NCBI GenBank assembly: GCA_965285935.1 | Contig: OZ260665.1 | Coordinates: forward strand, 64,728,001 to 64,792,000 | Source of the DNA: Ophelia neglecta | Lineage: Eukaryota | Length of the DNA stretch: 64,000 nucleotides | Direction of reading: 5' to 3' | In this document: positions 2,131-47,433 of the stretch, piece by piece | Layout of the letters: every line of letters begins with the position of its first letter | Position numbering within the stretch: position 1 is the stretch's first letter | Translations under genes and position numbers: made by a program | The notes under the pieces: generated by a model | The model's input: only the letters and a program-made list of their open reading frames with translations | Told to the model about the DNA's origin: nothing | Database searches by the model: none

Positions 2131-2196
2131 TAAATTCAGTGTTGCTTACTCTTACCATATTCCACAAACATTAAAAAAACCCTATCTGGTACTTAT

Positions 2197-6072: not shown

Positions 6073-6324
6073 TGATTAAGTCTTAAAGCAATGGGTCAAG
6101 TAAATTTATCCTAAAGTTTGATCGGCAACAACCCTCCCGGGCGCTGACATCTTGATATATACAGATATACGTCATCCGCGCGTGCGCCCTCCTCGGGAAT
6201 GACGTTTCGGCGGAAGTTACAGAACAGATCAAGAAAATATCGCAAAACAGATAAATAGAAAGCAATTGAAACGAATAGTGGTATTTTTGCGATTAGTATT
6301 GAGTAAAATTACAAATTCAACAAA

Positions 6325-6331
<7 letters not shown>
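6073..6331. promoter_or_regulatory. CpG-rich bidirectional promoter shared by PLD6 and TVP23
   Basis: 252 bp between divergent ATGs. CRE half-sites ACGTCA 6169-6174 and TGACGT 6200-6205, NRF1-like GCGCGTGCGC 6178-6187, ETS CGGAAGT 6211-6217, and YY1-type AAAATGGCGG 6322-6331 over the TVP23 start. Confidence 0.75.
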
Positions 6332-10032
<3,701 letters not shown>

Positions 10033-12535: not shown

Positions 12536-13860
12536 TAGTGTGGTATGATATGTCCAAATGATGGGTCCCGTAGGAATTTTGTGCCAAAATTGATTCTTTT
12601 GTGGATTTGGTACTATTGTGAACCATATTAACTGAAAAGTTTAGGGTCCAAATTCATCGGGCCGTGGAACCCTCTTTTTCGGCCATTTTTAAAATGGCCG
12701 CCACCAATCAGGCTTTGTATCATATCTCAGTAACTAATTGGAGGATTTTAATGATTTTTGTGTCTAGATATGGGTTTTTGGGATGCTGAGTCTGATTGTG
12801 AAGTTTCCAGATTGCTATGAGGTAGAAGACAAAACATACGATGCCCCCATTCACTTTTTTAAGTGGGGGGGGGGGGGCATGGCCCCCCGGCCCCCGCTTC
12901 CTACGCCACTGATGGAGACCTCCCACAAGAAGTGAAAGCTTTAGAAACGTTTGTCTGTAATGTATACTCACCAAAAGGGTCCTATACAACTTTGCCCGCA
13001 CTCCGTTGGGAGCTCTTCCGATCCACTAATTTTATATGCATGCGAGACAAATCATATATCTCACCAAATACACGCCGTCCGGCCTTGGAAGAGAATGTAT
13101 GGTTGCTTGAAGAAGGAGTTTACATTCCATTGAAATGACTAGCGGCCCCTGCTCCTTCTGCAGTTCTTGAGCTGGTAAAATGTGGATGCCGAACATTGTG
13201 CAAAAGAAATTGCTCCTGCACCAAAAACAAACTGCCCTGCTCCCCCCTGTGCAAATGTTTCTCTTCAGGATGTGACAATTTCTCTGATTACCACATGCAG
13301 GACAGTGATGATACGGATGACCATTAGCTATAAGGCTGTATAGGTAGTGTTAGTTTGCGCTCTATTAGTAAGTCATAGAGTGATCTTCTATTTGTGTGTG
13401 TATTCCCATTTCTGTTTACACTATATATATCTAGAGCTTGCATTAGAATGAAATATTGAAAATTGTAGTCCTTGTATAGTACTTTGGGTGGAGTAAATTC
13501 TTGACTTAACTGAAAAGTGGTTATATATTGAGTTTCTTTTGCAGCTGTGACCTTGATTTTGGTAAAATAACCCTGTTCTCTACCTCATAGCAATCTGGAA
13601 ACTTCATAATCAGACTCAGCATCCTTTAAAACCCATATACAGACACAAAAATCATTAAAATCCTCCAATTAGTTACTGAGATATGATACAAAGCCTGATT
13701 GGTGGCGGCCATTTTGAAAAATTGCCGAAAAAGAGGGTTCCATGGCTCGATATATTTGGACCCTAAGCTTTTCAGTTTATATGGTTCACAATAGTCCCAA
13801 ATCCACAAAAAAATCAATTTGGCACAAAATTCCTACGGATTTACACATAAGCCTGCACTA
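12536..13860 (+). mobile_element. Academ-like DNA transposon, internal deletion derivative (1325 bp)
   Basis: About 290-bp imperfect TIRs (12536-12826 and 13579-13860) starting TAGTG and ending CACTA. The interior keeps a decayed C-terminal ORF (LETFVCNVY...LPALRWELF...PAPSAVLELVKCGCRTLCKRNCSCTKNKLPCSPLCKC...C). No clean TSD. Confidence 0.75.
12912..13327 (+). pseudogene. Truncated transposon ORF with terminal Cys-rich (CXC/Cys8-type) domain
   Basis: Single frame interrupted by an in-frame TGA at 13136-13138; 9 Cys in the last 50 or so residues; acidic tail; TAG at 13325-13327. Confidence 0.7.
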
Positions 13861-14119
13861 TTATAAACAAAGCAATCATGTGGTATATTTCGCAAGATAA
13901 TAATATATTTTCAATTTGCTTAACGAGTTACAACTCGAAGATTACTATGAAAACCAAGCTGTCATTGATATATCTGCACTTTTGCGAAGGCATTCTCGCT
14001 GATTTTTAAGACAACTGGGGTGTTGGACTTTTGGCCAAACCTAAATTAAAAAACAAACGTTAAGTTTAAAGAAAATGTGGAATAGTTGAATGTGGAAAGT
14101 ATTTTTCTAAATGTCTAGG

Positions 14120-14680
14120 CATTTAAGATCCATCATGGCACAGTTCAGGGCTGGTGTGCTACCGCTGAAAGTTGAAACTGGAAGATTTCTTGGCTTTAGA
14201 ATAGACGTGCGACTGAGTGAAGTTTGCAACTTGAATGAATTGGAAGATGAGACCCACCTTTTATGTCTTGGTCCTGCCTACTCATAACTACGCGAAATGT
14301 TATAGCTCTATACCCGCGCCTACTCTCTTATGTATGGGCTTGGAAACCTCCGTGTCTTACAGAAGTTGGTCTTTTTGCTTAAATCTGTCAAGGAGAGACC
14401 GAAAAATATATATCTAGGGCCTACTCCCTGCGAAAAGAAATATTTTATCTTACATTATAATTCTAAAATTTATTCAGCTCTATTTTCTGTATTATCTGAG
14501 TTCTATTATTCTGTTTTCTCATTTGTATTCTTGTGTGTTCTGCCTTTCGCCTCAGTTTATGTACCTTTACAGTGTGAATAGTAACTTTTCAGAGGGCTGG
14601 GTCTACTGTTGTTTGTGCTGATTGTTGTATACCATATGTCTAGACAAGTCACTTTAATAATGGAGATACAATACAATAAA
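14120..14680 (+). mobile_element. 3' fragment of a non-LTR retrotransposon (RTE-X/CR1-group-like ORF2 C-terminus)
   Basis: Translates as RSIMAQFRAGVLPLKVETGRF...VCNLNELEDETHLLCLGPAYS*LRE, a decayed C-terminal Zn-finger motif of LINE ORF2; ends in an ATACA-repeat tail at about 14667-14680. Confidence 0.65.
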
Positions 14681-15810
14681 GCTTTTAAAATATAGCAACA
14701 TAGCAATCGTGTTTATATAAAGGAGTATTGTCGGTAAAATCAACAACTACTGTAACCATACGCATTTATAAATGTATTGTATTGCTGTTCAACTTGGCAT
14801 GAATATACGTGATTGGAATATTGATTTCCAGTGAAATAATAATGGAAACTCTATACTCAAGATGCCTTGTCGTAAATATCGTTACGTTATTCTCTCAATA
14901 GATGAACGCTGCATATAGGCCTTCTGATATATCATTGTTATAAGCCACGGTGTCTCATTTCAACTATCCAGTGGTGCTTATCTGCTATGACATGACTGTA
15001 GATGACTCTGGTAGCTGAGATCGGACGTCGTTTAACATATTGTGTCAAAGCTGTTGAGGGGTCTGATCAAGTAGATGAAACTTCTTTGAAATAAGCTGCG
15101 GTCAGTAATTCTCTCTCTTTGGAATTAACTTAATATTACAACAATAACGTTAGCTATTATGTAATTTGTCATTGTCCTTTTTATTTGATTTAGCAATCTA
15201 TTTAAACGCCCTTTAAACAACTTATCGGATCCTTTGCGCTCTATTAATAATAACCTCTATCAAGTTAACAATAAATAATATTTAATTAATAATTGTCGTC
15301 ATTAGGTATCCAAATCCGATATGCATAGGAATGCAGATCCAAGCTATATTTATTATCCACTGATAATTTAAAAAGATTAATAAATAAAGGCTTATGTTCC
15401 TTTTATTTCTAAAAAACATGATTAGTCTCAAAAGATGATGTTCCTTTTCTTAATTTCTAATAGCAGGTTGACGTCAGAAACGATTGTACCGTGTCACTGA
15501 TAGGGCCTTCACATAAAGGGCGAGGAGGAACGTGACCAAAGACATTGGACGTTCATGCCAACAAAGAAGTTTAATTACTGCCCGGTTGGCAAATCCGGGG
15601 GCTACACTCTTTAAAGTTTCTAGACCGATGGTAAATTAGGACTTGTTAGACTTCATGCATCGATGAAATTGAATTCAGTCCCTTTTCAACTATTCATAAG
15701 TTATCCATATCTTACGCATTCACACTTAATTTGTATTAAAATACGCCATTACGTAATAAGTCTCTTACACAATATTTTCTAGACCTAGCTCGGTCTATGA
15801 AGACTCGGTC

Positions 15811-15980
15811 CTATATATGAGAGAAAGGGGCTCTGTGGGAAGTCAGTTATTAGAGCGGCTGCGGTTTTGGGAGAAGACTTCATGTTTAACATTGCCTACA
15901 CCAGTTCCAGTTCCATACATGTCATTAGAAACACCATCTACAACCTCTCACCACGTCGTCCATTGACTGTAGTTTAAAAG
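15811..15980 (+). promoter_or_regulatory. TATA box + Inr and non-coding first exon of CUB-protease 1
   Basis: TATATATG at 15812; TCAGTT initiator at 15843-15848; donor AG|GTAGGT after 15980; matching acceptor at 17548 just upstream of the ATG. Confidence 0.55.
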
Positions 15981-17579
15981 GTAGGTTATTTTAGTATACC
16001 CAAACTCTAATATGCTGGTTGCAACAGTAGATATAGGCCTATGTGTGTCAGCTGGAGGAAAATGAAGAACGCGTGCGATTGAAAGGAAATATTAACTGCT
16101 CTCTCTATATATTTTTTTCTTCTATTATTCTACTTATAAGGCCACATTAATGGCGCTTGACGATTTCTTCCATTTTAAAATTTTAATGTTCGCAAAGGTA
16201 GTTCTAGATTCACGAAAAACAGTATATAATAGGTATATATAGTCCATTTACATTTAATTGAAACAGTATGACCACCGGTATTATATTTTGGTTAAATAGT
16301 ATAAACAAAATAAAAGTATGTATTTCGTAAAGCATGTTGATTAAATGCTAACTGTTGTATTTTGTAACCAGTATAACGGAGAGAAAATAAGACATAAACC
16401 TAACTGTTTACTTTGTCAGTCTGCCAGCTGGAACATCCCTTTGTTATACAAATGACAACACAGAATATTTCGGAAATAATTCTTATTTCTAACTCTTCCA
16501 CTTCACAGCAGTTTCAGAAAATTTTATTTTCTTGTAAACCAACCGATATAAATGCAGTCAATCGTGAATTTAGTATAATGATGATATTTATTCATTCTGG
16601 GCCCCAGGCCCTAATAGACTAATCAGGAGAGGTCATATTATATTATAAATACATGTTTTATGCTAACAAATGAATTATAAATAAATTTTACAAAGTGTTC
16701 AAATAACTAATAATAGAAGAATAAAAGATATATATTTTTTTATATAAATCATATATATACAGAATGATAATAATTATTAATGTTTACAGTCAAATATTAC
16801 AATGTTAACGTTATCTTACAACTATCCCATTATGTTTTAATTGGGGTCGGCAAGCACCCATTTAGCTCCATCTTGGCCATTCATGTGTCATGTAATACAT
16901 TTATGCCTAATATATTTACTAACGATGCTCCTAAATTCAATATAATCTTCCACATATTGAACTGGTGGTTTGTACTCTTTAGACCTGCTGTGAGAAACAT
17001 TTAATCACACCAAGGACTTTTACAACTTAATAAAATACCTTGTGCGCAATATGTTTGGGAAATTTAGTGGCATTGCATGTAGGCCTAAACAATGGAACTA
17101 AGTCCATTTTCCACCATTTTATTGCATGGCATTGTATAGGCCTGGACCCTAGCTATTCACCCTCTATTTATTTTCCCAGCCGACCTTAGGGACTGTTCCA
17201 TATTAACATTTGGCCGGGGGTGGGAGGGGGGGGGGGAATTAGAATCGTCGTAGGGGATCAATTGAAATTACTTTGACATTCTTAATGAGCACGCCCAAGA
17301 CTTGGTGACTCCACATTCCTCTTATTTGTGGCATTTGTACTGCAGCGTTCTAGCCTAGGCTTTTATAAGCTATGATTGGTTTCTAACAGAGCACACTAGG
17401 TATTATAAATTTTTAAATGTTCTGCTGAGGTTAGTATTATCAAATAATTTGGATAGCTATTAAATCGAACTCTATGTGCTGATATTGTCATAATTTTGTT
17501 TGAAATGTGAACTTATAATAGTTAATACGTTGTTTTCCTCCTCACTAGGTGGCTGTTTCATTTATCGGGATCAAGTGTG

Positions 17580-26255
<8,676 letters not shown>

Positions 26256-28742: not shown

Positions 28743-31700
28743 ATGCCGCGCAAGGTAAGATCGCGTTTTGTTATACTTTTGCTCGTGGACTATTAGAAAT
28801 GTCTGAATTCTGAATTAAAATCTTTAGGAGAGTCGGTTTCACAATATATTATTTTAGTTTGCCTTAGTTTGCACATTCTCTTTGTATTTGTAGTTTCTTA
28901 AACTTCTTGCATGCCTTATATTGATGTGGAATTATTGACTCATTGATTTGTAAAATAATTTGAAGTGTTATTCCAAAGCACATCTCCTCCCGCTAATATA
29001 AGTGTAACTGCTAGGTTGAGTGCACATTTGTTAGACAATACCAGCACGAGTCTTAAAATGGCAATTATCATTTCATCTTCCTTTTATTCAAAAAATCTTT
29101 TTGAAACAAAAAAAATACATTTTAACTAACTAAACACTTCGCTGTAGCCTGTGAATAAACTGTCGTCTGCGCCCAGCTCGTTTATCCCTCAGTGGGCGCA
29201 AAAAGCATCGTATATTTCAAGTAGGCCAATGTAATTATGTATGTACTTGTATTCCATCCCAGGTGCGGTTTGTTTGAATTGGCGCGTGTTTGTCTGCTTA
29301 AACAAAACGTGTAACTGCCACACCCTCAGCATGTAGTATAACGACTGTCTTTAAAATGATTGTAGATCTATTCGATGGTGATTTGGTTAGGCTACCTCTC
29401 CCTGGCAGAGGGGTATCAAATGTACCAAGACAGGATACCTAATGGGCCAAGAGTTCCCCACCCTTGTTATGATGAGTACGTATGGCAGGGGATTGGGCAT
29501 CTTAACCAGTTCGGGGGCGGCTCCAGAAACCCGTTCGGAGATGACTTCAATAAAAATGGAAAGGTAATACCGAAAAATTGCTTGTTTCTAAATTCAAACT
29601 CTGCATGCTGCATTATTATCTCGTTTAAGATTTAATTAATTATCGTTATGTAATGATCACTGTATAGTTAAAATATGGTTCAGGAGGTTAATTGATCATG
29701 CACAAGCATAAACGCTTGTTAAAATGGCACAAAAGAAGGAACCTCAAGTAAAACAAACACATCAAAAGACAGGATAACACCTTAAGGCTTATTTCCAAAG
29801 TGGTCCTTCAAAATATAGGCTTACACTTAAAGCTGCACACTTATAAATACCCTGATACATCACAGGTGCTTATATTAAAAGTAAAAGTATAAACAATTCG
29901 ACTGGTGATAAAAAATTCTAAAGCCTCGTTTCTGACAATTTGGTCTAAATAATAATGCTTGAAAAAAGTTTAGAAATATTGGAACATGATACCCTTCTGA
30001 CTGGCAGGTCATTCCAGAGCTTAGCACCAGTAAATGCAAAACTAGATTTACCACAAGAACCAACTCTGGGCAGAATTACATTATAAGAATTGCTCCTCGT
30101 GGAATAATTGTGAGAAATTTTACTGTGGGTACAGATGAATGTTAGGGCCGGATAAAATGATTTATTATGCTTATTAAGAGTCATGAAAATTTCTTACCAT
30201 CTCTTTTAATAATAAAATATAAGGGTCTATTTCGATGTCAAGATATGTACGTATCTACTAGGTATGGGATGAATGTCTGTGTAAGAAGGATTCGGATGGT
30301 GACGGGCGTACTAATGGAGAGGAACTAGGTGATCCTAACTGTGTATGGAACCAGGGGACGCTGCCAGAACATACCACTGGCATAACACACCCAGGTAAGC
30401 CCAGCCCACCCAACATTAAACATTTTATCAAACGTTTTGAAAAAAGTTAACCACAAACGTTTATAAAATACGTGTATAATAGATTTAAAAACGTTTTTAA
30501 CTTTCTTAATTGCTGTTAAAAAAGGTAAACACAAAACTTTCAGAAAAAAAACGTCAAATGAATGTTTTAAACACCTATTTAATTTGTAATAAAATGGTGA
30601 GTCACGAACATTTAAGGCAAACGTGAAGTCATATTATATAGCACTGTATCAAACGTTTTAAAGTGGAATGAAATGGTTAATGAGAAATGTTTAGAGAAAA
30701 CGTTTTAGAAATAATTTTAATTTTCTAAATAAGTGTTAAAAAGTAAAGTTCTCTTGAAACATTTAGAATAAAAAGGTTTAAATAACGTTTGAAATGCAAT
30801 TTTTATTATGAAATAAGAAATGCAATTTTTATTATGAAATAATAAGGTTACCGCAAACGTTTAAGGCAAACGCGAATAAAACTTTATATAGCACATTTTA
30901 TGAAACGTTTTAATGAAGAAATCCTTTTTAACCACAATCGTTTAGACAAAAGTTGAAAAAATGCTTAAAAACATTTTAATTATTTCAATAAGTATCAAAC
31001 ACTCGAAACTTTAAGTGTTAAACGTTTACAGGGTACCGGGAAATTCAAACCACCGATAATAAAAAAGAAACTTTCTAAACACGCTGTCTGTACAAAGAGG
31101 CCAGTTTTACCTGGCCCGGAGGTGGTCCGAATTAAGAGGATACCTTTCATTGATAGGCATATCTATATTTATATCTACAAAAAGTAGGCCCATGTTTTGT
31201 TTTGAATATTTTTGTGTTTATGTCTGCTGACATTATCTATATCCGTCAGCTCTCCAAATCATGAGACCATTGGACATGGACCGTGCGACTGACCTGTTTT
31301 ATCCTATTATCATTTCGCTATTTTTTTATTGTAATTTTGAATCATTGTTACTACTAAAAGATTACCCAAGCAGTAGTAACGGGTAGTTTTGCTCATGGTT
31401 CTAACACCAGATCACTACTACAGTTGTTTATTTTCATTCATGGTTACGACTGCGCGCGCATCTACGATTTTGAGACATTCGCGCGCATGTACCATTCTGA
31501 GACATGCGCGCGCATGTACCATTCTGAGACATGCGCGCGCATGTACCATTCTGAGACATGCGCGCGCATGTACGTTTTTGTTATAGGATTTTTTACTATG
31601 CTTCTTTGTTCTAAAAAATGGCGCAAAAAAGCACAACTATTTGCACAACTTTCTACCATATTTTTAACTTATGGTGTTGGAAAAGTACAGTTACGTTTTA

Positions 31701-34700
31701 TTATAACATGTTTATTCACTTATGAAATATTATTTTTGTAATAACTTGTCTACTATATATCACATGTTGGGGTAAAGTTTCTATAATGGGATCAAATAAA
31801 GTATATTGTCATTTGTTTAATGTTCAATTTAGATTGCTTTTAGATGTGTGTAAATCACCTGAGATGTGCAGCGTAAAAAGTTTTGTAAACCTTTATGCCA
31901 TAAAAAAAGTATGTTCAAGAAAGCTACAAAGTATGTTCTAGGAAACTAGAAAGCTATGGCATGCTTGATTAATTTGTGTAAAAGTATAGCTTTTATCATT
32001 TATGGCAGTGTTGCCCCATTAAATAAACTTTGTTAATAGTTGGAAAATATTGTATTTATATTATTTAAATGTTTGAAAGAAGAAAGAAATATTGAAAACG
32101 CATTTAAGGAATAATATTGTGAATGTTTTTAAAAGGTTAACATATGTTAAAAAGAGCCAACAGAAGACGTTTGAGGAAAAACCTTATAAAACTGCATGTT
32201 AAAAATGGTTCTAAAAAACGTAACAAATTAATGTTAAATAACAATTTATCTGGGTTTTTTCAAACGTTTATATGTTTTGAAAAAAAAAACATTTTAAAGA
32301 CATTTAAAACACGTTTCTTGGCTTGGTGTTTTAACATCAATGGATGGCGAAAAAAATTGTTAGGTTAGCTGATATTTTATTATTCTTTAGACTGGATAGC
32401 CCTAACCGCTTACGCGGTATTTCATAGGGGACCAGTTAATAAGTACAAATGATACAAGAGTGGAAAAATATAATTATACTAAAGCATCTGTAGTAATAGG
32501 GAGTCAAGCCCATTATTTTGATACAGGGAAAGATTCGGTATGTACAAATATAAAACTATCCCTACTATATACATAAGAAAACACTGTAGCACATTCAGGC
32601 AAATTCAATTATTTAATTACTCAATGCGTATAATTATATGTATACCCTTGAGATTCCCATTTTAATCAAACGTTTGTTTTAGGTCTATGCGAGCCAACAG
32701 ACAGTGCAGCGTGCGTTGAGAAAAATGAAGCATTTGGCGACTTTTGCGTCCGCCCGGTGTCTGAGTGTGACTTAAGCAGTATGACTGGTTGGTATTTCTT
32801 TAACTAGTTGTTAGAAATGGTGTTTCTGTTCAACTTGTTTAACGTTTAATGACTTTAACTTGTGTAAAAAGAATAAAGGAAACAACGAGGCGAAAGGCTT
32901 GTTTCGCATCATGGGAGTTAGACCTTCTTTGCAGTGGTAGGAATACATTTATTTTGGGTTTAATTTATAGTAGGTCTATCATCGAGTAAAAGTAAAGAAT
33001 GCCAAGTGCAATTTCTATTATTGTATATAATAACTGTTGTTTATTGTTGAATTCAAACATATGTAGTCTATCTATATTTGCATGAAGGCATGTCTAGAGA
33101 ATTTCATTCGGGCCTAATATTACTGGCCAGCTACGCATGTTTGTGATTGGCCAAGTAGACTCCCTTTTGCTGGGCGCTGCTGGTTGCTTATCGCCTGGGG
33201 GGGAAGTGGAGGGGGTAAGGGGGAGTTGCACTAAAAGGAAGATGGGGGAAGGCAATTTTTTTCCTACTTTACGAGGGGATTTACCTTAGGCCAAATTGGG
33301 GGGGGGGGGGGGAGGGGAGTGGAGGGGTAACTAGAATTTGATAGAAACTTGTTTTTATATTTTCCCATATATACTAAGTTAGACCCATTATCTCCTCACT
33401 GCTCGAAAAAGACAGTAAAATCAAAGTGTTTGTGTATAGTTATACTACCTAATTAACAAGCAATTGAACTTTACTAACCAGGCAGCTTTTATCGCTTTTT
33501 CTTCACTTCAGATGTCAGAACAATGACTTTAAGGATAAATAACACCGAGGTTTGTTCATACATCATTCATTTTTCGATACAAATTTGTTATACACACTAT
33601 TCTATATATGAGGGGTCTAAATACTGTGCTCCTCCATGAACATAAAATAGCACATTTGAAGCATGGAATAGAAGGGGGAATTGCATCCATTTTATAAGTT
33701 TTCTTTTAATCCAGGTACCAACTGTAGGAACAAAGTTCTACTGTGCCCTATTTGCCCTCCCTTCCGACCAGGACTATCATATCGTGGCCACGGAGGCCAT
33801 CATTAACAATACAAACGTGCTCCACCACCTTTCCATGTTTGCCTGCGAAGACTCCGTAGATATTGAAGGTGGGTAAGCAGATAGTTAGATTGGCATTACC
33901 CACAAGTAAGAGGAATATCAAATGATCTATTATATGTTGTATTATAATAGGAATATATATGTTCATTTTTAAATTAAAAGTGCACAAGAAATGTTCATAC
34001 ATGCTACCGATTTTAAGAGTGCGGTTATACAATTTCACCACAGCAGTTGAAATTTGTTAGCAACTTTTTAGTTGGGAGGGGTCGTGAAAACATCGCGGGG
34101 AAAATATAAGCAAACTTTGTTTTGAGACAAATCGTTCCAATCATATATAGAAATTCATCATGGTTATAAATATAGTTTCGTCGTGATTGCATGTACATGT
34201 ACCGTCCATCAACTTTACGGATTGCAGGTGATGCCCTATTAAACAATTAAATAAACTAGAGCTCATAATTATATCGTTCCTTTGAACAGACGACCCTCCT
34301 TCTACTGAGGCCTCCCTACTTATGCAGGGAGAATGTCGGGGCCCGGGGATGCCACGATGTAGCATCTACTACCCCGGATGGACCTTCGGAGATCGGGATG
34401 GCCATTGTAGTGAAGGCAAATCATATGGGTATCGGTTTGGGAAATCATCTTACAAAAGGATCGGTTTTGAAGTAATTTAAATGTCTAACTTTGGCCCTTT
34501 ACGTGAAAAAAAAACAGTCGGAATTTCGACTTAAACGCGTTTATGTATAGGCCGCCCACCGAATCAACAGCGACTCTTCTGACCATTCTTGGAAGCCAAT
34601 ACTTCTTTCAGAAATTATGTAAGAAGTTGATGATAGGTGACCAAAAGTAATCCGAGCTTAAAATTATTCATTTTACTTTGAGTATTCGAGATCAGCCTAT

Positions 34701-37700
34701 ATATTTGGACGTTAAAACTTCACTTCTTCGACAGTAGGCTAATGACCGGAACAAACGGTGTAATATTATTTCGTTTGCAACCTCTAGCGAATAATGCGAC
34801 AGCTTCGACTCAAGTTACCAAAAGGAACTCAGTATTATTTATATAACATTGGCCTTTAGTCCTACTACCCGTCAATTAAAACATGTAACGTTACAAAGTG
34901 TGCACTTCTTCACCAATGAACATATCTACATTACGAGGAAAAAAATTGTTTATATGAAAATACCATTTGATTAAAGAGCAGTTTGACATAGATCCATGCA
35001 GATGGACTTTTCTGTACACCCTACCTCCAACTGCGGAAATGATTCTCAGCCATCTGGGAGGTGATAGGTATATTTGAAGGTCAGAGCGCACCATGGTTCC
35101 CATGAAAGCCCCTGCCTTTGCATTTCTGTGCTGTCAATATACATGTATCCTGCTTCTGCCGTTAAAACCCTGTTCCTCCTGCAATTACTAATTAATATAT
35201 ATATATATTCCGATTTTCGCAGTATCATTGGTCGAATCCCGAAGAGATTGAAGGTTTTTGGGACAGTTCTGGATTCATTTTTTCCTATACTCCGGTGTTA
35301 CTGGAGCATGATGTGGGCATTCTGGTTCTAGGGCCCGTGGGCTTTTATTTGCCGCCAGGGCAACCTGCGTTCAAGGTGACCGGGAAACTCCGGGCGGAGT
35401 GCTTTAATCTCACGGCCCCCGTCCAAATCTTCGCTACCCATACACATATGCACTACCAAGGTCTGTATAAATGTTATAAGCCATCTAATCAGAGAAATTA
35501 TAATAGTTCAAGTTTCCCTAGGTCCCTAATATGAAGTAGTACCCCTTTATCTAAATTCTATAGTTGTAAACATGACCCGACATTGCCTACATTGACACTG
35601 TCTTTTTGCTTGCAACATTAAGCTTATCAAATAGATTACCTGTTTGAGTCTGTGACTTTAATTTTATGTTCTTCCACCAACTATATACCATTCCCTTTTT
35701 TAAACAATAGTTCCATTTTTCACAATAAACATTACGTGGGACCGTGGAGGACAATGATTAGATGTTTCGTTCTTTGTAGGTCGTAAGGCGAAGGAGAAGG
35801 TGTATCGTGACGGCCAAGAAATCACCTTCCTAGACGTCGACTCCTGGCTCTGGGATAGTCCCACAATCGTCTAGTAAAAGATATTCTCTTGGATAAACCG
35901 GATTATTGATATCAAATTGTATAGCGCTATTTAAATTTCAAAACTCATACGGACAAGAGGGGAGGTGGTAACAAACCCATAATTTGTAGATACGCCCCTT
36001 GGTATGTCGAAATCTTTTTTAACTTATAAATGTCTATTATAGACTTAATGCTATATTTCTTTGTGTCCTCAACTGCAGCAGTTAAGACGCCATAAATGTC
36101 CCCCACGCTAACTATTCGATTAAATACAATAAAAATAATGGCCAACAACCAGAAATTTGCCAGTTAAGCTGGTAATATACCTAGTGGTTTTGCTATAGGT
36201 TACACCTGCGAACTAAACGTGCTACCCTAGGATAAAGGCGGGTTAAACCGCGCATCGTTTAATTCAATTGTAATCGGTTAATTGCGCGCAGGAAGTAGGC
36301 TTATTCCGCCCTTAGTGTACGGGCAAGCAGTTTTCATCGGAATGTATGCGCGGAATAAGGCTACTTCCTGCGCGGAATTAAACGATTAAACGAAACGGAC
36401 TTCTCCCTTTACTATCTCTGTCTATTTGCAGTCATGACCCGCCTATTGAACTGCGACCTGGAGACTCGCTGATTACAGAATGTGAATACAACACCTTGCT
36501 AGAGGATCAATTTATTTATTACGGTGGCAACGCCTGGGACGAGATGTGCTTCAATTCCCACTTTTTCTATCCACCGTTGATGTCAACATCCTATTATGGG
36601 TCTTGGCGGTAAATCTATTTCTTATTCCTGTTCTTTTATCATATCGATACTTGATTATTTGAATCCCTAAGTATAGCCCCAAACTATTCAGTCACATCCT
36701 AAATGTATGAAAATGATAATCGTTACCGTCGTTCTGGGTGTAGAAATGCAAGCCCCCCCCCCCCCCCCCCTCATTTGATAGGTAAATAGTAAACATATTT
36801 GTCTGAAAGTCGACTCCTGTCATAGCCTGAATTATAGCAAGGTCAAATCTAAAATCTCGATAAGATGCGAAAATGTGGTTTCCTTTAGACCTTAGGTTGC
36901 CGATTTACTTCTAAGCCTAACTGCTAAAAAAAAACTGAATTAATCATTTTGGTCATTTAACCTTGAAAGTAAACATCAAGGTCACATCTGAGAACTCGAT
37001 AAGATGCAAAAATGTAGTTTCCTGTAGGTTCTCAATGACTCTGAGGCTCAAACTGATAAATTAAGGCTGAAAGCATGATTGACCTATTTTACCTTAAAAG
37101 GTACGTCAAGATCAAATCTGTTAATGCCTTTAAAATCATAACATAAACGCTCCCAATACATGTTGAAGGCCTAACTGCTCAAATAAAGACGTTACGAAAA
37201 GCAAGAAGAATCGTCACTTGTTTGCCCTTATTATGACAACTTCAAACGTTTTGGGCTTCATAAAGACCCCTGAAACAAGACTGTTCCAATGCTTGGTTAG
37301 ATAAATGATTTTCCTTTTTCACCCAGGGCTGACGAATTTGAAGACGACTGTTGGAGGGCATACCCAGGTGCTACGTCAGCCACTGTGGAGGCACGTGCCA
37401 ATGCCTTGGATCTTTATAACGGCGACCAAACCCGCCCTCTGGTGGAGGATGTCCTCAACACCTGCGATAACTTAGGGGCTAAGTGTTTTCCTGGTTGTCA
37501 GGCCACCATCGACGCTGTCCTATCGTCCGGCCATCCCAGTGTCGGCACCCAGCGTGACCTTGATTACGCCCTTTACATCATCAGGGCAGTGACCCGTCAA
37601 GACAACTTTGAGTCGGCCATGAGAAGCTGTGAGTACTCCCGACATATCAGCCCCATGCGGAGAGTAGCCGGAAACACGTGTGACGACCCGGAGATCCCTA

Positions 37701-37771
37701 ATTCAGGGATTGCTATTGTGGCTAAATATATTGTCTTCATTACACTTATCACTTTTTCATTGGGAAAGTGA
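28743..37771 (+). CDS. Temptin-domain copper type II ascorbate-dependent monooxygenase (DBH/MOXD1-like, no DOMON), probably GPI-anchored, 591 aa; exons 28743-28754, 29366-29563, 30262-30394, 32683-32787, 33512-33549, 33715-33868, 34290-34471, 35223-35460, 35780-35873, 36432-36608, 37327-37771
   Basis: Signal peptide ending AEG|YQMYQDRIPNG. Temptin motifs PHPC..WQGIGH..GGGSRNPFG.DF and LCKKDSDGDGRTNGEELGDPNCVW...THPG. CuH ligands VLHHL and EYHW; CuM ligands HMH and DEMC; LRPGDSLITECEYNT. C-terminal NSG followed by a hydrophobic tail. All introns are GT-AG and phase-consistent. Confidence 0.9.
29900..30200 (-). mobile_element. 3' fragment of an L2/Crack-type LINE
   Basis: HNYSTRSNSYNVILPRVGSCGKSSFAFTGAKLWNDLP matches the typical L2/Crack ORF2 C-terminus (H.Y.TR...F...G.KLWN.LP). 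Confidence 0.7.
30400..32326. mobile_element. Degenerate AACGTT-rich non-autonomous DNA element with nested insertions
   Basis: Ends CCCAGC...GCTTGG. Recurrent AAACGTTT subrepeats in 30400-31030 and 32090-32326, with unrelated sequence between. TIRs are degenerate. Confidence 0.35.
31451..31573. repeat. 27-bp minisatellite, about 4.5 copies (TGCGCGCGCATGTACCATTCTGAGACA)
   Basis: Units start at 31451, 31478, 31505, 31532 and 31559; the repeat explains four spurious overlapping ORFs. Confidence 0.95.
36250..36395. mobile_element. Small palindromic MITE, copy 2 (monooxygenase intron)
   Basis: Starts GCGCATCGTTTAA; CGCGCAGGAAGTAGGCTTATTCCGC pairs with GCGGAATAAGGCTACTTCCTGCGCG; homologous to 19151-19344. 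Confidence 0.65.
36835..37180. repeat. Degenerate tandem repeat of about 130-140 bp (AAGGTCAAATCT...TCGATAAGATGC..AAATGT.GTTTCCT), 2-3 units
   Basis: Unit starts at about 36839, 36978 and 37108. Confidence 0.55.
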
Positions 37772-39940: not shown

Positions 39941-42900
39941 ATGAATGTCACGTGTTTGATCTTTCTGGGCCTAGTGGCACTGGCAAGGTAAGCAAGTTAT
40001 CAAACTTTGAATCAATAATCATAAACTTAATCGGGGAAAAATCAATGATCTTTTAGATATATCCAAAGAACGTAATCAGTAAATGGCGATTATAGTCGAT
40101 TTAAACTTGATCTATTCGACATTCAGTACGGCCTCTCTCTATAGTAAGTTGAATGTTGTGAAATTTGCAAGTTGATAAACGCAATCCAGACCCTGCCCTT
40201 ACATGTAGTTGTTCATTCATACCTTCGACAAGATGATTTGTGCACTTGACTAGCTTATTATTATGGAAATGATACATCTAACTTGTACAGTATTATTTCG
40301 ACTTTTTCACTTTAAAAGACAACATTGATATAAAATCTGATTACGGAATACATGGCAAAATTAAAGTTATTTTAACACCCTTAGCTCTATGTCTGTGTAC
40401 AACAAAGCCAAGGATATCGAAGAAAATAAGTTTGTTCTAGGGAAGATGAGAAGAGGAATCGTGCCTACAAAGGTAAGAAACTGATACAACTTGTGTCCAA
40501 AATAAATCTTCGCATTGTTAACGTGTCGGAATGCTATCCAGCAAACATGATCCAAAGGTAGTGGAGTCTGATTAAAACTATGTAGTCTAACATAGATGTA
40601 ACTGTATAGACATATTTAATGAAATGAATATTTATTAGAGACCTTTTTCAAATAATTCTTGTGTATGAGTGGTTAAAGTACCCTGTTCATAGACGGCATT
40701 TAAATTACTGGCCATGATCACCCGCTATAACCACTGTGAGCAGGGCTCTGGTAATAGCCAACTACTTTGAATTTGTCTCAGCCTCTCACTTTTTCCCGTG
40801 GATGGATGGCAGCAGGGAGTGAATATTGGAGACTTCAACACATGACACTATATATAAGCCTAAAATTAATGTTATTTATAAGATTGCCATTGATGTGCCC
40901 ATTCGGTATCCTATATATAGAAAGCAGACGACATTAATCAGTAAGAGTACTCCAATTCAATTGAGATTTTACCAATGAGTTTTTTTCAGATTGCGAAAAA
41001 TATGACCAATATGTCCGTGGAAAGTAAGACGAGTAAGATGGTCTCTACCAAAGGATGGGCAGATGGTACGCATAAACCTTATTTGTATTAACAGAAAAAA
41101 AACACCGCAACAACATCGACTCCCATTAATAAATTCTGATAAAAAAACTACCTTATGTTAGAATAACTTTATTTTAAGTGATTTTCTGAGGAAGATTGGC
41201 GTAAATAGGTTAATTGAATTAAATGCACCGTTTCACTACTTAGAACCAGGATGCAATCGATATGTGGCGGTCTTTGAAATTGAATCGGAATTTACTTCTC
41301 CAAGATACCCACGGAATTATCCTAATTCTGCCCACTGTGAATATTTGATACAGGCCCCTGCTGGCAAAGTAAGTGTTTTTAACTGTCATCATCAATCAGA
41401 GAGACCTATATAATTAGCGAAGTATTCGTTGGATACATAAATTGTATTAGATTTCACAGATTTTAGTGATTGCCCCAGTGTTTGCATTTAATTAATAAAT
41501 ACGGCATTCAATAATTATGAAATATATTAGATCCATATCACCTTGAAGTTAATTTAAGGTAATTTATAATTATCCAAACCATTTTGCATTTGAATTAAAT
41601 CATGTTACAAATTGCCATTGTTGTATTATAATCACATTTCATTACAATTTTATTATATTATATTTTTTTTCGGGTGACCGTCAATATCAATCATTAGACT
41701 GTCATATTATGTAAGAATTGATTCGGCGGGGCTTCAGACAATGTGCCCATGTGCACCTGAAATATCAAAGTTCATTGGTTAATAGATCCACAGTGACAAT
41801 ATATGAAATAAACCTTTGCAGTCGGTGCAGTTGTCCATCCTGGAGTGTGATATAGAACACCAGATGGATTGTAGCTGGGATTCACTCTGTATTTACGACG
41901 GATCAGATGAGATGGCATCCCAGGTGGTTTGTTATTGTGGGGAAATAGACGATCTAGTATTGGTCAGCGAGTCCTCGGCGCTTTTTGTCGTTTTTCATTC
42001 CGACATCAGTGAACGTCATCGTGGCTTTAAGGCAACATGGACCTTCATTGACACGCAAAGTAAGTTTTGGACATTTAATCGATAAAAAGTTGTTTATAAG
42101 AAATTCTTAAATAAGTTTGGACTGCTCAGCCATTTAGAGCGGGCATGCTTGAATTAGGCCTTGTTTAAAATACATTCAAAGGAGAAATAATTCGCGATCA
42201 TCAATGACACTTAAAAAGAAGAGAGGTAAACAGATCATCTTTAATGTAGAAAGTATATATAATGGCAAATGTGTGCACGCTTTGAAATATTACTATAAAC
42301 TATTATTATTAATATTATAAGTAGGGGGACTAAAAATGTGTTTATGGGGGGGGGGGGGGCATTTAGGGACATAGTTTGTTTAGTAGCATTTCTATTTATG
42401 TGCTGTTTGGGAGCTGGGGATTTATATATGTGGGCCTGTGGTTTCTGATGAGTTCGGACCGATCTAACTTACTATTGTTTTTGCCTTTCCTGCCAGTTAT
42501 CCACTCCCGTTTTTTGCCTTCCCTTGTGACCTTGATGCTCTTGCCCACACTTGACTGCTGTCCATTCTATTTGACATTAAACTTAACAGACTTTTTAATT
42601 TGTTGTACAAAATAATCAGCGATGTTGTCTGCAGCCTATGCCCCTCTCCTCTCATCCTTACAGTAAACAAAATGATATACTAATATTTCTACCTTTTGCT
42701 TTCAGCTACAAGTCACAATGACCAAGGGTCTGGTTCTAACTATTTTGGCAACTACGACTATTCTGGCGATTTTGATTATTCTGGCGACTATGAATATTCT
42801 GGTAACTATGTCGACTTCACTCCTGCACCCCCTTGTGACCAGACACTTAGCGGCCAGTCTGGTATTTTCACGAGCCCAAAGGAACAAGGCAGCAATCATT

Positions 42901-45900
42901 ATCCTAACAATGCACACTGTGTCTTCAGCATCACTGTAGCCGAAGGAAAGGTGATATAAATTAATATTCATTTATTGACCCAATTTACGAACAAACTAGT
43001 TGTCAGTATATGATCCCTATGGGGTTAATGTTGCAGGTGGCATTGTCAAGCCTGGCACTTTACCAGATATATTCCATGGAGATTGTAATAACAACTCTTA
43101 AAAATGCGGAGAAGATTATTTATAAAATTCAACTAAGTTTGCCTAATTGTCAAGTTCATTGACTAAAAAGCATTTCCATAGCGGAAAACGAAGCAAGATG
43201 TGCATGCTTTTTAAGGCAATAGTATGAATCGATTTCTAACTGATCCGACGGAGAAGTTACATAGTTTGTCCAAAGTTTTTGCCGTAATACTAATTGAATA
43301 ATTTGGCACAGGTCCAGGAAAAATATACATATGGTAAGTGCTATGTAAGAGTTCCTAATGCCTTGTAAAGGGAAACACTACTACCCGTAATGGGAACCAC
43401 TACTGACCCTCAAGGGAAACACCACTGTCCATCACGGGAAACACCACTGTCCCTCACGGGAAACACCACTGTCCCTCACGGGAAACACCACTGTCCCTCA
43501 CGGGAAACACCACTGTCCCTCACGGGAAACAACACTGTCCCTCACGGGAAACACCACTGTCCCTCACGGGAAACACCACTGTCCCTCACGGGAAACACCA
43601 CTGTCCCACACGGAAAACACCACTGTCCCTCACCGGAGACACCAGTGTCACTCATCAGAAACACCACTGTCACTCACCGGAAACACCACTGTCCCTCACA
43701 AGAAACACCACTGTCCCTCACGGGAAACACCACTGTCCCTCGAGGGAAACAACACTGCCTCTTAGAAAAAAAACCAGCTATTCCTCAAGGGAACCTCACT
43801 GCCACTCTTGCCACATCTGCACCTTCTTCCCTTTTTTTGGTGTGCGCACTTTGATCAGGTAAAAATATATCTGCTTTGTTTTGTTTGTGATGCCCATACG
43901 AAACTTTTTCGCTTTTGAATTGAGAATTAATTCTATCGCACTGCATTGCTCAATGCTTTGAAATTCACTTGTGATGTAGATCTATTGTTTGCTTACATGT
44001 AATTATTTGCCACCAAAATCAGACATTCACGCTTGACCAAATTTGAAGTATTGAGATACTATTCGACGCCAGACCATTCTTAAAAAAATACTGGTCTTGT
44101 CGTCCTAGTCATTTCTATACTACTGTGAATGGCCAAGTGGCTCTTATTAACAAGACAAGCGCGTCGAAATATTACAATAATAATAACAATTATAATAAAT
44201 AATTGTTTAAAAAAAGTATATGGATGATGTTCCCAAATATCGTTAGACTTTCAGGTAGTAAAAGCATAGAAGGATATTTTTAACTCTTAATGTAGCTAAC
44301 TACTCGAAAATCGAAACGGCTAGATTCTTATCATAATTTGCCTTGTTTGTCACCTTCATAAAAGGAAAAAAATGGAATAGAAGGTAACGAGCTTTTTGAG
44401 GGATAAAGTTTTAAGATAGTAATAGTAGGAAACAGGCAGTCTTGACTGCTATAATAGACATGCAAGAGATAGAAAAGATGTTTCCTAAACATGTTCCCAA
44501 TATTTTATTGCTGTTTCGGTGACTTTTCCAAATTAAATGTTTCTTTCATTATTTACAGAGAGTTCACTTGCGTTTTGAGAATTTTCACCTAGAGTTTGAG
44601 GAATTCTGTAGCTTTGACCGTGTTGAAATCCATGATGGGCTGGGTGAAAATAATACCCCTGTGGTTGGCCAAGTACAGTGTGGCCTATTTGCTCCCGCTG
44701 ATACAACCAGCAGCGGGCGGTCAGTCAGTTTGGTGTTCATCTCTGACCATTCCATTACAGGCACTGGATTCACGGTATGTATAGGGCATTTCGTAAAGTA
44801 TTTTAAGCACACCGATTTCAACAATTACAATGAACACATAACTTTCGGAAAAGGCTTTCTGGTGCTCCTTGTCTCATTCTAGATATTCTGTTCTGGCCTG
44901 AATATGTTCCTGCTTATAAGAAATTATAAATTGTAGAAATTTATAATGAAAATATTCAAAATTTCCTTTAATGTCCACAATAATTATTACTGTTGAATAT
45001 TACACTTTTGGCTAAAATTTTATTAAAGGAAATGTTTATAATATTTTTATAAATTGACGAGTTTCTTATACACGGATGGTACATATACAAATTAATGATT
45101 TCCCTTGCTATATCTAGGTACATTGGACTGCAGTTGGGAATGCAAACGCTCCTGCACCCCAACTACCGGTCCCCTCTCCCGCCTCGCCTAGCCCTCCAGG
45201 GACACCATCTTGTGGGGTTCCTGCCATCCAAGCGCGTTTCCGTATTGTCGGTGGCGTTGTAGCAGAGGCCCACTCGTGGCCCTGGCAAATCTCTCTGCGG
45301 CACCATAACCGTCACATCTGTGGTGGTAGCATTATCTCCAATGACTGGGTAGTCACCGCGGCTCACTGTGTGTAAGTCTAGGCTATATGGAATCTCTGTA
45401 GTCCGTTGACTACTAAAAAACAGAATAATTTTAAAGTGATGTATACTAGTTTAACTGAAGAAATACTCCTTTTAAAACGTCTACTCATATTGCATGTACT
45501 TTGGAGTTCTGAACAGGCGTGGTTTTATTTCCAGGGATGGTAATCCTGACCCCAATAACTTTAAGGTAAGGATTGGGGAACATGACTTTAACAGTGATGA
45601 GGCTTCACAACAGGATATACAGGTACTCGTATCGCTTTTAATACCAGAAAAACACTTGTAGATAATTCAAATATGTTGACATATTAAATGGAAAATGTTA
45701 TTTAAGAATTGCCTGTAAATGACCATTATGAATTTAGATATAAAGACCATATTGATCTCTATGATACATTAAAATAGTACTGTTACTAACCGTCGTATAA
45801 ATCAATGGCAATTTATATTCATACAATACAGGTTTTGCATAAAAGTTGTATTAAAAATCATAGTTCAACCTCGTTCTTATTGATATACAAAATATGCATA

Positions 45901-47433
45901 TATGTACGCATTATCGTATTATGATAAATGTTGATTGTATATAGGTAAATCTGATAGTTGCCCACGAGAGATACAACAGCAATACGATGGACAATGATGT
46001 GGCGGTTTTGAAACTGGCTACCCCAATCACATTCACGGACAAGGTCAGCCCAGTGTGTTTGGCCGCCGCTGACGCCCAAGAGCGCCTTTTGTGTACTACT
46101 ACCGGCTGGGGAACCACCTTAGGTGAGGGAACTTCTTTCAAATCCTTTATAACAAATCTTTATATTTTAAATATAGATAGGACTGAAACTAATATTTTTA
46201 AAAAGAACTCCTGTTAACATCATTTACACCTATGTCTGTAGTGGACATCTTTACATGCAAGTTAATATTTCAGACATCCTGTAATTTGCTTTTTTTTTTT
46301 GCAGGAACTGGGAATGGCAATATTCTGCAGCAGGTTAATGTGCCAATCATTGCCCTGAATACGTGCAACTCCATGTATGAAGGGCGGATCACCAATACCA
46401 TGCTGTGTGCTGGATTCCCGGAAGGAGGGAAGGACTCCTGCCAGGTTAGAACCGAATTTAATTTAAACAAATGATCTATGGTTACCAAGTCCAAATCAAA
46501 TTCAGAAACATTAGTTTTGCTTAGAGCAATCAAACCTACTATTTAACTTATATGCAATCCCTACAACGTGGTGACAATATATATCTAAACTTCTTTAGAA
46601 TTTATGTCCAAACATGCACTGTAGATAATGAAACAAAAACCAGAGTATCTTTTAGACTTCATAATTATAAGTGATAACATTAACAAAGGTCTCCAGGCAC
46701 AGTGGCGGATTGAGGGGGTTGGTGGGAACGGGCACATCTTTTTTCAAAAAGTGAGCCCGGACCAGGGCATGTTTCTGGCCCCAAGCGGGGTGGATTCAGA
46801 GGGTTGGTAACGGGGACTATTCAGGCATTTGCCTTGTGTGCATGTGTAAAAAAATAACCTTTTTCTTGAGATGTAAACTGGATAAATTCAGTTTGTATCC
46901 GTACGATTACAGGGTTTAAATTTTGTAATCTACTTGCATATGATATAATTTCATTATCCGTAAAGTGTTCTGGACTTCCACATACATAAATTATAAAAAT
47001 ACCTATACATTTATAGGGAGATTCTGGTGGACCATTAGTATGTCGTAACCCTGCAGGCACGCACTATTCCTTGTACGGGATTACAAGCTGGGGATTTGGC
47101 TGTGCCGAAGCCAATGCCCCCGGAATCTATTCTCGTGTTTCCCGTCTCACTGGCTGGATAGAAGCCAAAACCGGAGGTGAGACTACTAATACAACCACCT
47201 TATTGGCAATTTATGATCCATTAATCGTCTCCTGTAACAATCCATATCCCTCAAAGTAAATGGTCGAAAAATATTAATTAGTGTACAGTACAAAGATATA
47301 CATGGTGTTCGTGTGCCTAAACACATTTCATTCTTGTGCTGTGTGATAACATCTTTGATACTACTCATAACATTATTTCTTGATACTTAGTCAATCACGT
47401 AATTGAAATTTTACAGTGAGTCCACAACCATAG
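39941..47433 (+). CDS. Secreted CUB-CUB-trypsin-like serine protease, paralog 2, 623 aa; exons 39941-39987, 40385-40472, 40990-41065, 41244-41368, 41822-42059, 42706-42950, 44559-44774, 45118-45371, 45535-45622, 45945-46122, 46305-46444, 47017-47176, 47417-47433
   Basis: Signal peptide [17 protein letters not shown]; two CUB domains; ARFR|IVGG; TAAHC / NDVAV / GDSGG; S1 Asp (GGKDSCQ). Same 13-exon phase pattern as paralog 1, with exons 5, 7, 12 and 13 of identical length. AATAAA at about 47614. Confidence 0.92.
43370..43760. repeat. 22-bp minisatellite (CCCTCACGGGAAACACCACTGT), about 17 copies, intronic
   Basis: Head-to-tail units, homogeneous in the centre and degenerate at the edges, with no spacers. 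Confidence 0.95.

Follow-up and report, generated by a model that had tools for sequence, protein, structure and literature searches.

A probable intact and divergent member of the temptin/mono-oxygenase hybrid family in Ophelia neglecta

DBH, TBH and MOXD1 carry an N-terminal DOMON domain, and the C-terminus of MOXD1 is hydrophobic; PHM has no N-terminal module and is fused to PAL in many animals. Temptin is known as a water-borne pheromone component of Aplysia and, according to older modelling, reportedly adopts an EGF-like fold; free temptins (130-148 aa) are encoded by genes of their own in many molluscs and in Trichoplax. Temptin and a copper monooxygenase core occur together in a hybrid family that, to our knowledge, is confined to lophotrochozoans. 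Takahashi et al. (2009) described this temptin/mono-oxygenase hybrid, in which DOMON is replaced, in Aplysia, Pomatoceros and Lottia, with full cDNAs from Aplysia and Pomatoceros (PMC2762978); a literature search beyond this work found no further paper on the temptin domain, PF24784 or a temptin monooxygenase. The hybrid architecture is widely annotated in molluscs and annelids, mostly under the names “tyramine beta-hydroxylase-like” or “DBH-like monooxygenase”, and among the matches listed PF24784, PF01082 and PF03712 occur together in all of at least 120 relatives of the protein P0063. An earlier note on the DNA analysed here had guessed that similar fusions exist among automated annotations, and a large annotated family does indeed exist. 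As this architecture has been in print since 2009 and annotations of it are widespread, the gene described below is a new copy, and a divergent one, within a family already known: what it adds is one divergent member and no new kind of system.

The window, a stretch of 64,000 nucleotides of the O. neglecta genome, contains a gene model of 11 GT-AG exons on the forward strand (28743-37771), the phases of which all match, resulting in a single reading frame of 577 aa (Table 1). The start and end given in the earlier note are the ATG and the stop codon of this model, and its assignment of a temptin module, a 4-Cys stretch, a PHM/DBH core, a Cys-rich C-terminal domain and a hydrophobic tail to one gene holds, as a single open reading frame closes over all of them. 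We conclude with high confidence that the locus is one intact protein-coding gene belonging to the temptin/mono-oxygenase hybrid family of Lophotrochozoa, whose proteins are type II copper, ascorbate-dependent monooxygenases within the DBH/PHM superfamily. Pfam and PDB searches were carried out exon by exon, folding was done on database homologues, and the joined translation was used for local blastp, tblastn, MAFFT and the trees.

Table 1 Exons of the temptin/mono-oxygenase gene model in the window (residue numbers refer to the 577-aa product).
Feature	Position	Strand	Content
Exon 1	28743..28754	+	ATG and three codons (MPRK), donor GTAAGA
Exon 2	29366..29563	+	Remainder of the signal-like hydrophobic N-terminus IYSMVIWLGYLSLAEG and N-terminal half of temptin
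Exon 3	30262..30394	+	C-terminal half of temptin with the acidic loop DSDGDGRTNGEELGDP and HPG
Exon 4	32683..32787	+	4-Cys stretch, part of the temptin module; Cys columns also kept in free temptins
Exon 5	33512..33549	+	38-nt mini-exon VRTMTLRINNTE ahead of the catalytic core; required for phase
Exon 6	33715..33868	+	Start of Cu2_monooxygen; HH pair, CuH ligands H199 and H200
Exon 7	34332..34471	+	Continuation of the N-terminal catalytic domain (C..C..YYPGW...)
Exon 8	35223..35460	+	Third CuH ligand H262 (YHW); CuM pair H-M-H (H335, H337)
Exon 9	35780..35873	+	Middle of Cu2_monoox_C; donor TA/gtaaaa interrupts an apparent TAG stop
Exon 10	36432..36608	+	End of Cu2_monoox_C; DEMC methionine, CuM ligand M409
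Exon 11	37327..37771	+	Cys-rich C-terminal domain (6 Cys), N-S-G, hydrophobic tail IAIVAKYIVFITLITFSL, GK, stop

Three parts of the model were placed by phase and homology only: the 12-nt exon 1, the exon 4 donor, which is weak (GTTGGT), and the exon 7 acceptor. The junction between exons 1 and 2 is of phase 0, and the homologue P0161 aligns to the model from residue 1. Exon 4 has two candidate donors, ACTG/gttggt at 32787 and an alternative at 32778 that shortens the product to 574 aa; 32787 is preferred because it alone reproduces the family spacing of a Cys followed by six residues and the DV motif, and the 574-aa model was dropped. The mini-exon 5 lies between the acceptor cttcag and the donor GAG/gtttgt and fits the family motif DV.N.TLRFP.T.VP. 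The acceptor of exon 7 (ggag/AA), the sole one that keeps the frame with the donor at 33868, is less certain than any other junction in the model; exon 7 taken alone gave no Pfam match, and by local blastp it is colinear with family members. The borders of exon 8 are common to paralogues, the phase-2 junction of exons 9 and 10 reads TAT, and the translation of exon 11 aligns with the C-terminal ends of family members. The public sequencing runs for the organism are all of genomic DNA, and the three sets of contigs matching the window cover the introns evenly, without splice joints. The introns of the gene are invaded by high-copy repeats.

Temptin_C (PF24784, cut-off 27 bits) is matched by exon 2 over profile positions 2-53 (54.7 bits, E 1.5e-14) and by exon 3 over positions 54-97 (65.5 bits, E 6e-18). 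The domain read by the earlier note from the string DSDGDG..TNG.ELGDP.C.W...HPG is thus present across profile positions 2-97, together with that string; the half encoded by exon 2 includes IPNG..VPHPC..GIGH..RNPFG, and the intron at profile position 52/53 is common to all temptin loci in the genome. Each of the invariant temptin columns of the family (D, D, D, N, E, L, G, D, C, W, H, P, G, C) is kept in the window model. The 4-Cys stretch had been regarded as a linker, a view that has to be abandoned: free temptins contain the same stretch, hence the first ~147 residues of the window protein are a complete temptin. Comparison to the free temptins showed that residues ~20-147 match their whole length, with Temptin_C, the DSDGDG loop, the conserved His and Cys residues and the Cys-rich tail in common. 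Free temptin is, however, a small secreted protein (~100 aa), whereas the temptin of the window is a domain of a 577-aa enzyme that is predicted to be membrane-tethered; it runs in frame into the monooxygenase and is not a stand-alone secreted (pheromone) form. The AF2 model built for a free temptin, which is of good quality (pLDDT 86.8), found no PDB match by Foldseek or VIA-align wide.

The catalytic core is matched by Cu2_monooxygen (PF01082) in exon 6 (38 bits, cut-off 30) and by Cu2_monoox_C (PF03712, cut-off 23) in exon 8 (19 bits) and exon 10 (34.9 bits). The earlier note had read an intact PHM/DBH-type core with the ligands HH, H, HxH and M, and all six copper ligands are present and align with human DBH (PDB code: 4ZEL), LHHL with VHHM and YHW with YHN at CuH, in columns at least 90% conserved in the family, and H-M-H with H-T-H and DEMC with EEMC at CuM, where the family consensus is NHMHYLG ... 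DEMC. Each catalytic exon has 4ZEL as its best PDB match (phmmer; exon 8, E 1.8e-6), and no PHM chain was found at E≤1 in the PDB search with any single exon. The AF2 model of the homologue P0161 (pLDDT 92.9, pTM 0.86) matches the fold of DBH best (E 8.5e-30), followed by PHM. DBH is the best match in the PDB both for the sequence of the window exons and for the fold of the homologue, and DBH, TBH and MOXD1 share with the window protein the two-domain copper core and a C-terminal domain after this core. They differ from it by having DOMON where the temptin module is found here: DOMON (PF03351) is absent from every exon and from the whole contig (C8), in line with the earlier proposal that temptin stands in its place. 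PHM has the same catalytic fold and ligands and comes second, as a group, in the fold search with the homologue model; its sequence similarity to the window protein is below that of DBH.

The protein ends with PNSG, about 20 mostly hydrophobic residues and GK. Most family members share such a hydrophobic end (86 of the 112 full-length ones), followed by 0-13 residues (by no more than 8 in all but one), hence the tail without a cytoplasmic part, noticed earlier in this sequence, is a family trait. As judged from the sequence, the conserved tail is compatible with a GPI signal, a C-terminal membrane anchor being equally possible.

The window model is colinear over its full length with annotated hybrids of Lophotrochozoa, and agrees with them in the order of its domains (temptin, Cu2_monooxygen, Cu2_monoox_C, no DOMON) and in its position in the core tree. 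In local blastp, residues 1-568 align with residues 1-563 (of 565) of P0161, the Haliotis rubra “DBH-like monooxygenase protein 1”, with 358 bits, while DOMON types align from residue ~145 only, with at most 160 bits. A phylogeny was built on 286 columns of the catalytic core, with an outgroup set without named mollusc DBH, TBH, MOXD1 or PHM; it places the window model with the temptin-bearing proteins on one side of a branch (SH-aLRT 99) and the DOMON types on the opposite side.

About 33 temptin loci are extant in the genome, each with monooxygenase exons nearby on the same strand, as judged from scan coordinates and from tblastn searches of the first 10 kb of the 30 paralogue loci. The genome yielded no locus for a free temptin, and about seven separate DOMON-type loci are found elsewhere in it. 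Compared to most of its paralogues, the window gene has two extra introns, one inside the region of temptin and the Cys stretch and one before the core. The exons of the paralogues are up to 78% identical to any retrieved protein. In a tree of temptin modules, the deep forks of which are poorly supported, most mollusc free temptins fall into two groups without any fused module, and the label free or fused changes twice, compared to about 20 times with shuffled labels. Since free temptins have genes of their own and for the most part do not cluster with fused modules, the proposal that proteins of this kind are the source of free temptins is without support.

The model could join two adjacent genes, a free temptin (exons 1-4) and a separate monooxygenase without DOMON (exons 5-11). 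In other species free temptins do have their own genes and end after the same Cys-rich stretch; exon 4, however, has no stop, and its phase-1 end is in frame with exons 5 and 6, the junction region fits the family motif with exact spacing, and single local alignments span the junction in many annotated proteins. The same arrangement recurs at all 33 loci in the genome, and fused transcripts are known in other species, both from the cDNAs (PMC2762978) and from P0199, an uninterrupted open reading frame on a 2.1-kb Logan contig, i.e. a transcript. A separate monooxygenase would moreover be left without its own start and signal peptide, and we consider two genes extremely improbable.

A second proposal accepts one gene and regards it as a decaying or functionally relaxed paralogue, either an incipient unitary pseudogene or a binding protein without catalytic activity, within a large, tandemly expanded family. 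The window copy is a fast-evolving paralogue in a family of about 33 loci: its terminal branch is the longest in the core tree (1.98, compared to a median of 0.57) and in one further tree, it is 33-43% identical to the retrieved hybrid members and no more than ~43% identical to any retrieved protein, and it lies by itself on C8, the main clusters being on C9, C7 and C2. The Cys columns of the core are mostly kept, but the family residues C323 and C437 are replaced by Leu and Tyr, which removes the equivalent of the first Cys in the YCTDKC of DBH and its likely partner and thereby probably one conserved disulfide pair; we take the two to be paired by analogy with the DBH disulfide C390-C503. 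An otherwise invariant C-terminal Cys is a Ser in the window copy. These losses and the repeats in the introns speak for decay, and relaxed constraint on this copy is conceivable from its sequence. Set against this, the open reading frame runs through the 11 exons uninterrupted by any stop or frameshift, every splice site is canonical, the six copper ligands and the acidic loop are retained, 92 of the 103 columns that are at least 90% conserved in the family are kept (30 of the 32 invariant ones), and the temptin module is well conserved, with 61% identity to a Pinctada member. Decay or loss of catalysis is accordingly unlikely in our view, if less so than a pair of adjacent genes, and the reading as one intact hybrid gene is retained.

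The intact hybrid would be routed into the secretory pathway by its signal peptide. The tail after N-S-G is predicted to be swapped for a GPI anchor or to hold the enzyme in the membrane, and the enzyme would then act either at the cell surface or within the lumen of a secretory compartment. The two-copper core would work as in PHM and DBH, CuH taking electrons from ascorbate and CuM binding O2 for the predicted hydroxylation of a C-H bond of the substrate. The disulfide-rich temptin module probably binds Ca2+ through its DSDGDG loop and probably packs onto the core in a fixed manner; that it serves as an adaptor for a substrate or a partner, as the earlier note proposed, may be conceivable.

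The temptin domains of this genome are, in their overwhelming majority, parts of enzymes, and the family to which they belong is large and strongly expanded. As the hybrid family has no assigned substrate, research on amine signalling in molluscs and annelids is likely to be misled by automated names like “tyramine beta-hydroxylase-like”. The finding of temptin here only as the N-terminal domain of about 33 monooxygenase genes is the basis of a more speculative proposal, to which we give a low probability: temptin could at root be part of an enzyme and, in a Ca2+-dependent way, bring a ligand or substrate to an extracellular hydroxylase held by a GPI anchor. If so, the temptin fold would represent a new kind of domain for substrate recruitment, the members of the expanded family would act on secreted molecules of the matrix or of signalling, in the chemistry of shell or mucus for instance, and the free temptins that other molluscs use as pheromones would be soluble relatives with the same ligands.

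The DNA of the window is eukaryotic, with a GC content of about 36% and only short ORFs. On its plus strand, recognisable protein motifs lie in stop-free stretches between 28743 and 37771. Read border by border, this interval resolves into 11 exons, all with GT..AG borders and matching phases, which join into a single ORF of 577 aa, reproducing the start, the end and the exon count of the earlier note. The donor of exon 4 at 32787 was preferred because it reproduces the spacing of the family, 'Cys + 6 residues + DV'; a donor at 32778, which would give a 574-aa product, was set aside. The model is least certain at three points: exon 1, which is 12 nt long; the exon 4 donor, GTTGGT, which is weak; and the exon 7 acceptor.

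Positions of the exons, of the adjoining genes and of the monooxygenase loci elsewhere in the assembly (C, contig)
Feature	Position	Strand	Remark
Exon 1	28743-28754	+	border read on DNA
Exon 2	29366-29563	+	border read on DNA
Exon 3	30262-30394	+	border read on DNA
Exon 4	32683-32787	+	border read on DNA; donor 32787 preferred
Exon 5	33512-33549	+	38-nt mini-exon, demanded by phase
Exon 6	33715-33868	+	border read on DNA
Exon 7	34332-34471	+	border read on DNA
Exon 8	35223-35460	+	border read on DNA
Exon 9	35780-35873	+	donor TA|gtaaaa divides an apparent TAG
Exon 10	36432-36608	+	border read on DNA
Exon 11	37327-37771	+	border read on DNA
CUB-CUB-trypsin-like protease gene	18744-26026	+	one side of the monooxygenase gene
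CUB-CUB-trypsin-like protease gene	41162-47256	+	other side of the monooxygenase gene
Main temptin-monooxygenase cluster	C9:5.85-8.75 Mb		12 loci
Main temptin-monooxygenase cluster	C7:9.4-11.04 Mb
Main temptin-monooxygenase clusters	C2:82.9 Mb; C2:96.85-97.37 Mb
DOMON-type loci	C7:33.28-33.32 Mb		three
DOMON-type locus	C7:31.85 Mb		one
DOMON-type loci	C1:123.55 Mb		two
DOMON-type locus	C2:41.9 Mb		one

The exons were searched singly against Pfam (cut-offs: Temptin_C 27, Cu2_monooxygen 30 and Cu2_monoox_C 23 bits). Temptin_C (PF24784) extends over two exons (profile positions 2-53, 54.7 bits; 54-97, 65.5 bits), Cu2_monooxygen (PF01082) scores 38 bits and Cu2_monoox_C (PF03712) 19 and 34.9 bits, values that are far beyond chance. 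Intron 3 (30300-32300) is packed with high-copy repeats, with a summed contig depth of 1,000-20,000 as against about 20 in its flanks; a 27-bp tandem repeat (4.6 copies, 31451-31573) is the origin of long spurious ORFs on both strands.

The protein begins with MPRK and a hydrophobic stretch ending in AEG, followed by YQMYQDRIPNG, in agreement with the consensus GY...Q..IPNG at which the mature proteins of the family begin. The temptin module (residues ~20-115) holds DSDGDGRTNGEELGDP and HPG, and is followed by a stretch with Cys 117, 125, 136 and 143. The best PDB match of every catalytic exon is human DBH (4ZEL), to the ligands of which the copper-ligand residues align (CuH: H199, H200 and H262; CuM: H335 and H337 of an H-M-H motif, and M409). 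Exon 11 encodes a six-Cys domain and ends with ...DDPEIPNSG, about 20 mostly hydrophobic residues and GK. Such a C-terminal hydrophobic stretch, often with small residues just before it, is present in 86 of 112 full-length family members, with 0-13 residues beyond it (at most 8 in all but one); a putative GPI-like signal is thus a trait of the family. The window's copy keeps 92 of the 103 highly conserved columns (≥90%) and 30 of the 32 invariant ones. Of the two invariant misses, the one at family C147 is an alignment artefact, as the Cys spacing there matches. The real differences are Leu and Tyr at two Cys columns, the counterparts of the first Cys in the DBH motif 'YCTDKC' and of its likely partner, and Ser in place of one invariant C-terminal Cys.

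The public runs that contain the window DNA are genomic, with introns at an even depth of about 20 and no splice joints, and whether the temptin and monooxygenase exons form one gene was therefore judged on comparative evidence. The translation used was assembled by coordinates and served in local comparisons only. Residues 1-568 align end to end with residues 1-563 of the 565-residue fused protein of Haliotis rubra (P0161; 358 bits, local blastp), whereas DOMON-type monooxygenases align only from residue ~145, with at most 160 bits. An exon 8 query against 1.84 billion representatives gave 219 matches, about 20 full-length ones of which carry temptin at residues ~10-120; Pfam confirmed all three families in P0004, P0006 and P0016, and DOMON was found in P0002, P0007, P0015, P0026 and P0038. 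With the family member P0063 (Babylonia) as query, 253 relatives were obtained, and all 120 of those listed carry the three families, in gastropods (Haliotis, Littorina, Lottia, Patella, Aplysia, Biomphalaria, Lymnaea), bivalves (Mytilus, Crassostrea, Ostrea, Pecten, Sinanodonta, Pinctada) and the annelid Owenia. P0199 has all three domains in one unbroken ORF of 566 aa, encoded on a Logan contig of 2,105 nt, which is a transcript. The AF2 model of P0161 (pLDDT 92.9, pTM 0.86) suggests a fixed domain arrangement, with a helical C-terminal domain beyond the core and then a terminal helix; its best fold match is DBH 4ZEL (E 8.5e-30), followed by PHM.

When the 762-Mb assembly was scanned in six frames with Pfam, 33 temptin loci emerged, and profile position 52/53 is where every one of them is split. 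According to the coordinates, 32 of them are accompanied on their own strand, within ~0.5-12 kb, by exons of Cu2_monooxygen, Cu2_monoox_C or both, and tblastn found monooxygenase-like exons at the remaining one (C1:86.7 Mb); therefore, no free-standing temptin gene was detected by these searches. The loci lie mostly in tandem clusters, with single ones on C1, C5, C8 and C12, and the window contains one, the studied copy. Two loci at C17:67962-117855 have scores and spacing identical to two at C7:10989817-11037614; the probable cause is that C17 repeats this part of C7 as an unplaced duplicate or haplotig. The closest paralogues are at C2:97.36 Mb (80% identity in exon 3) and C2:96.85 Mb (73%). 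Exon borders at model residues 70/71, 258/259 and 337/338 are common to the paralogues, most of which, unlike the window gene, have exons 3 and 4 merged, as well as 5 and 6. The DOMON-type loci, about seven, are all apart from the temptin loci, and the genome scan found none on C8, the contig of the window.

The adjoining genes on both sides, on the same strand, are paralogous multi-exon serine protease genes with RIVGG...TAAHC and GDSGGPL...WG.GCA motifs, one ORF having a Pfam CUB match of 53 bits; beyond this adjacency, nothing pointed to a functional module. Within the region of the downstream gene, at 43369-43859 (+), all three plus-strand frames are open, with repeated units of ~22 aa and no Pfam match; two readings fit this stretch, a repeat and a low-complexity exon.

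In a tree of all kept columns, temptin-bearing proteins and the window's model fall on one side of a branch with an SH-aLRT of 100, and they stay together (SH-aLRT 99) in a catalytic-core tree of 286 columns from which the temptin columns were excluded, a pattern that would fit a fusion that arose once, as measured against an outgroup of algal, chytrid, apusozoan, trematode and nematode DOMON proteins that includes no named mollusc DBH, TBH, MOXD1 or PHM. No terminal branch is longer than that of the window's copy (1.98, median 0.57).

With the temptin exon of a paralogue as query, free temptins, 130-148 aa long, turned up in Mytilus, Magallana, Ostrea, Patella, Biomphalaria, Lymnaea and others, as well as in Trichoplax and a monogenean. 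In an alignment with the fused proteins they run on across the Cys-rich stretch, so that what the earlier note had read as a 4-Cys linker belongs to the temptin module. The AF2 model of the Magallana gigas free temptin P0277 (ma9c1dadbc57f; pLDDT 86.8) is confident, mostly irregular with short helices, and neither Foldseek nor an exhaustive VIA-align wide search found a match in the PDB. The same note had considered fused genes as a possible source of free temptins. On a weakly resolved module tree (112 columns), with deep forks lacking resolution, the free/fused label changes twice, as against ~20 times for shuffled labels, and two groups without a fused module take in most of the free temptins of molluscs. 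This argues that free temptins are not recent products of fused genes.

The fusion had been rightly read from the sequence, as the domain matches, the single ORF and the colinear homologues confirm. Its architecture is of a kind that has been published before and is widely annotated. Takahashi et al. 2009 (PMC2762978) sequenced a Pomatoceros cDNA in which temptin takes the N-terminal place that DOMON has in the DBH-like family, identified this hybrid gene in Lottia as well and named the 'Temptin/mono-oxygenase hybrid' a lophotrochozoan synapomorphy. We found no paper assigning it a substrate or function. In studies of the mantle and shell of molluscs and of the infection response of snails, 'temptin' and 'DBH-like' are listed among regulated genes, the architecture meant not being stated. 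The window gene is a new, divergent member of this family and, by analogy with the PHM/DBH family, its product would be a two-copper hydroxylase, either in the secretory pathway or tethered to the surface, whose temptin module would bind Ca.
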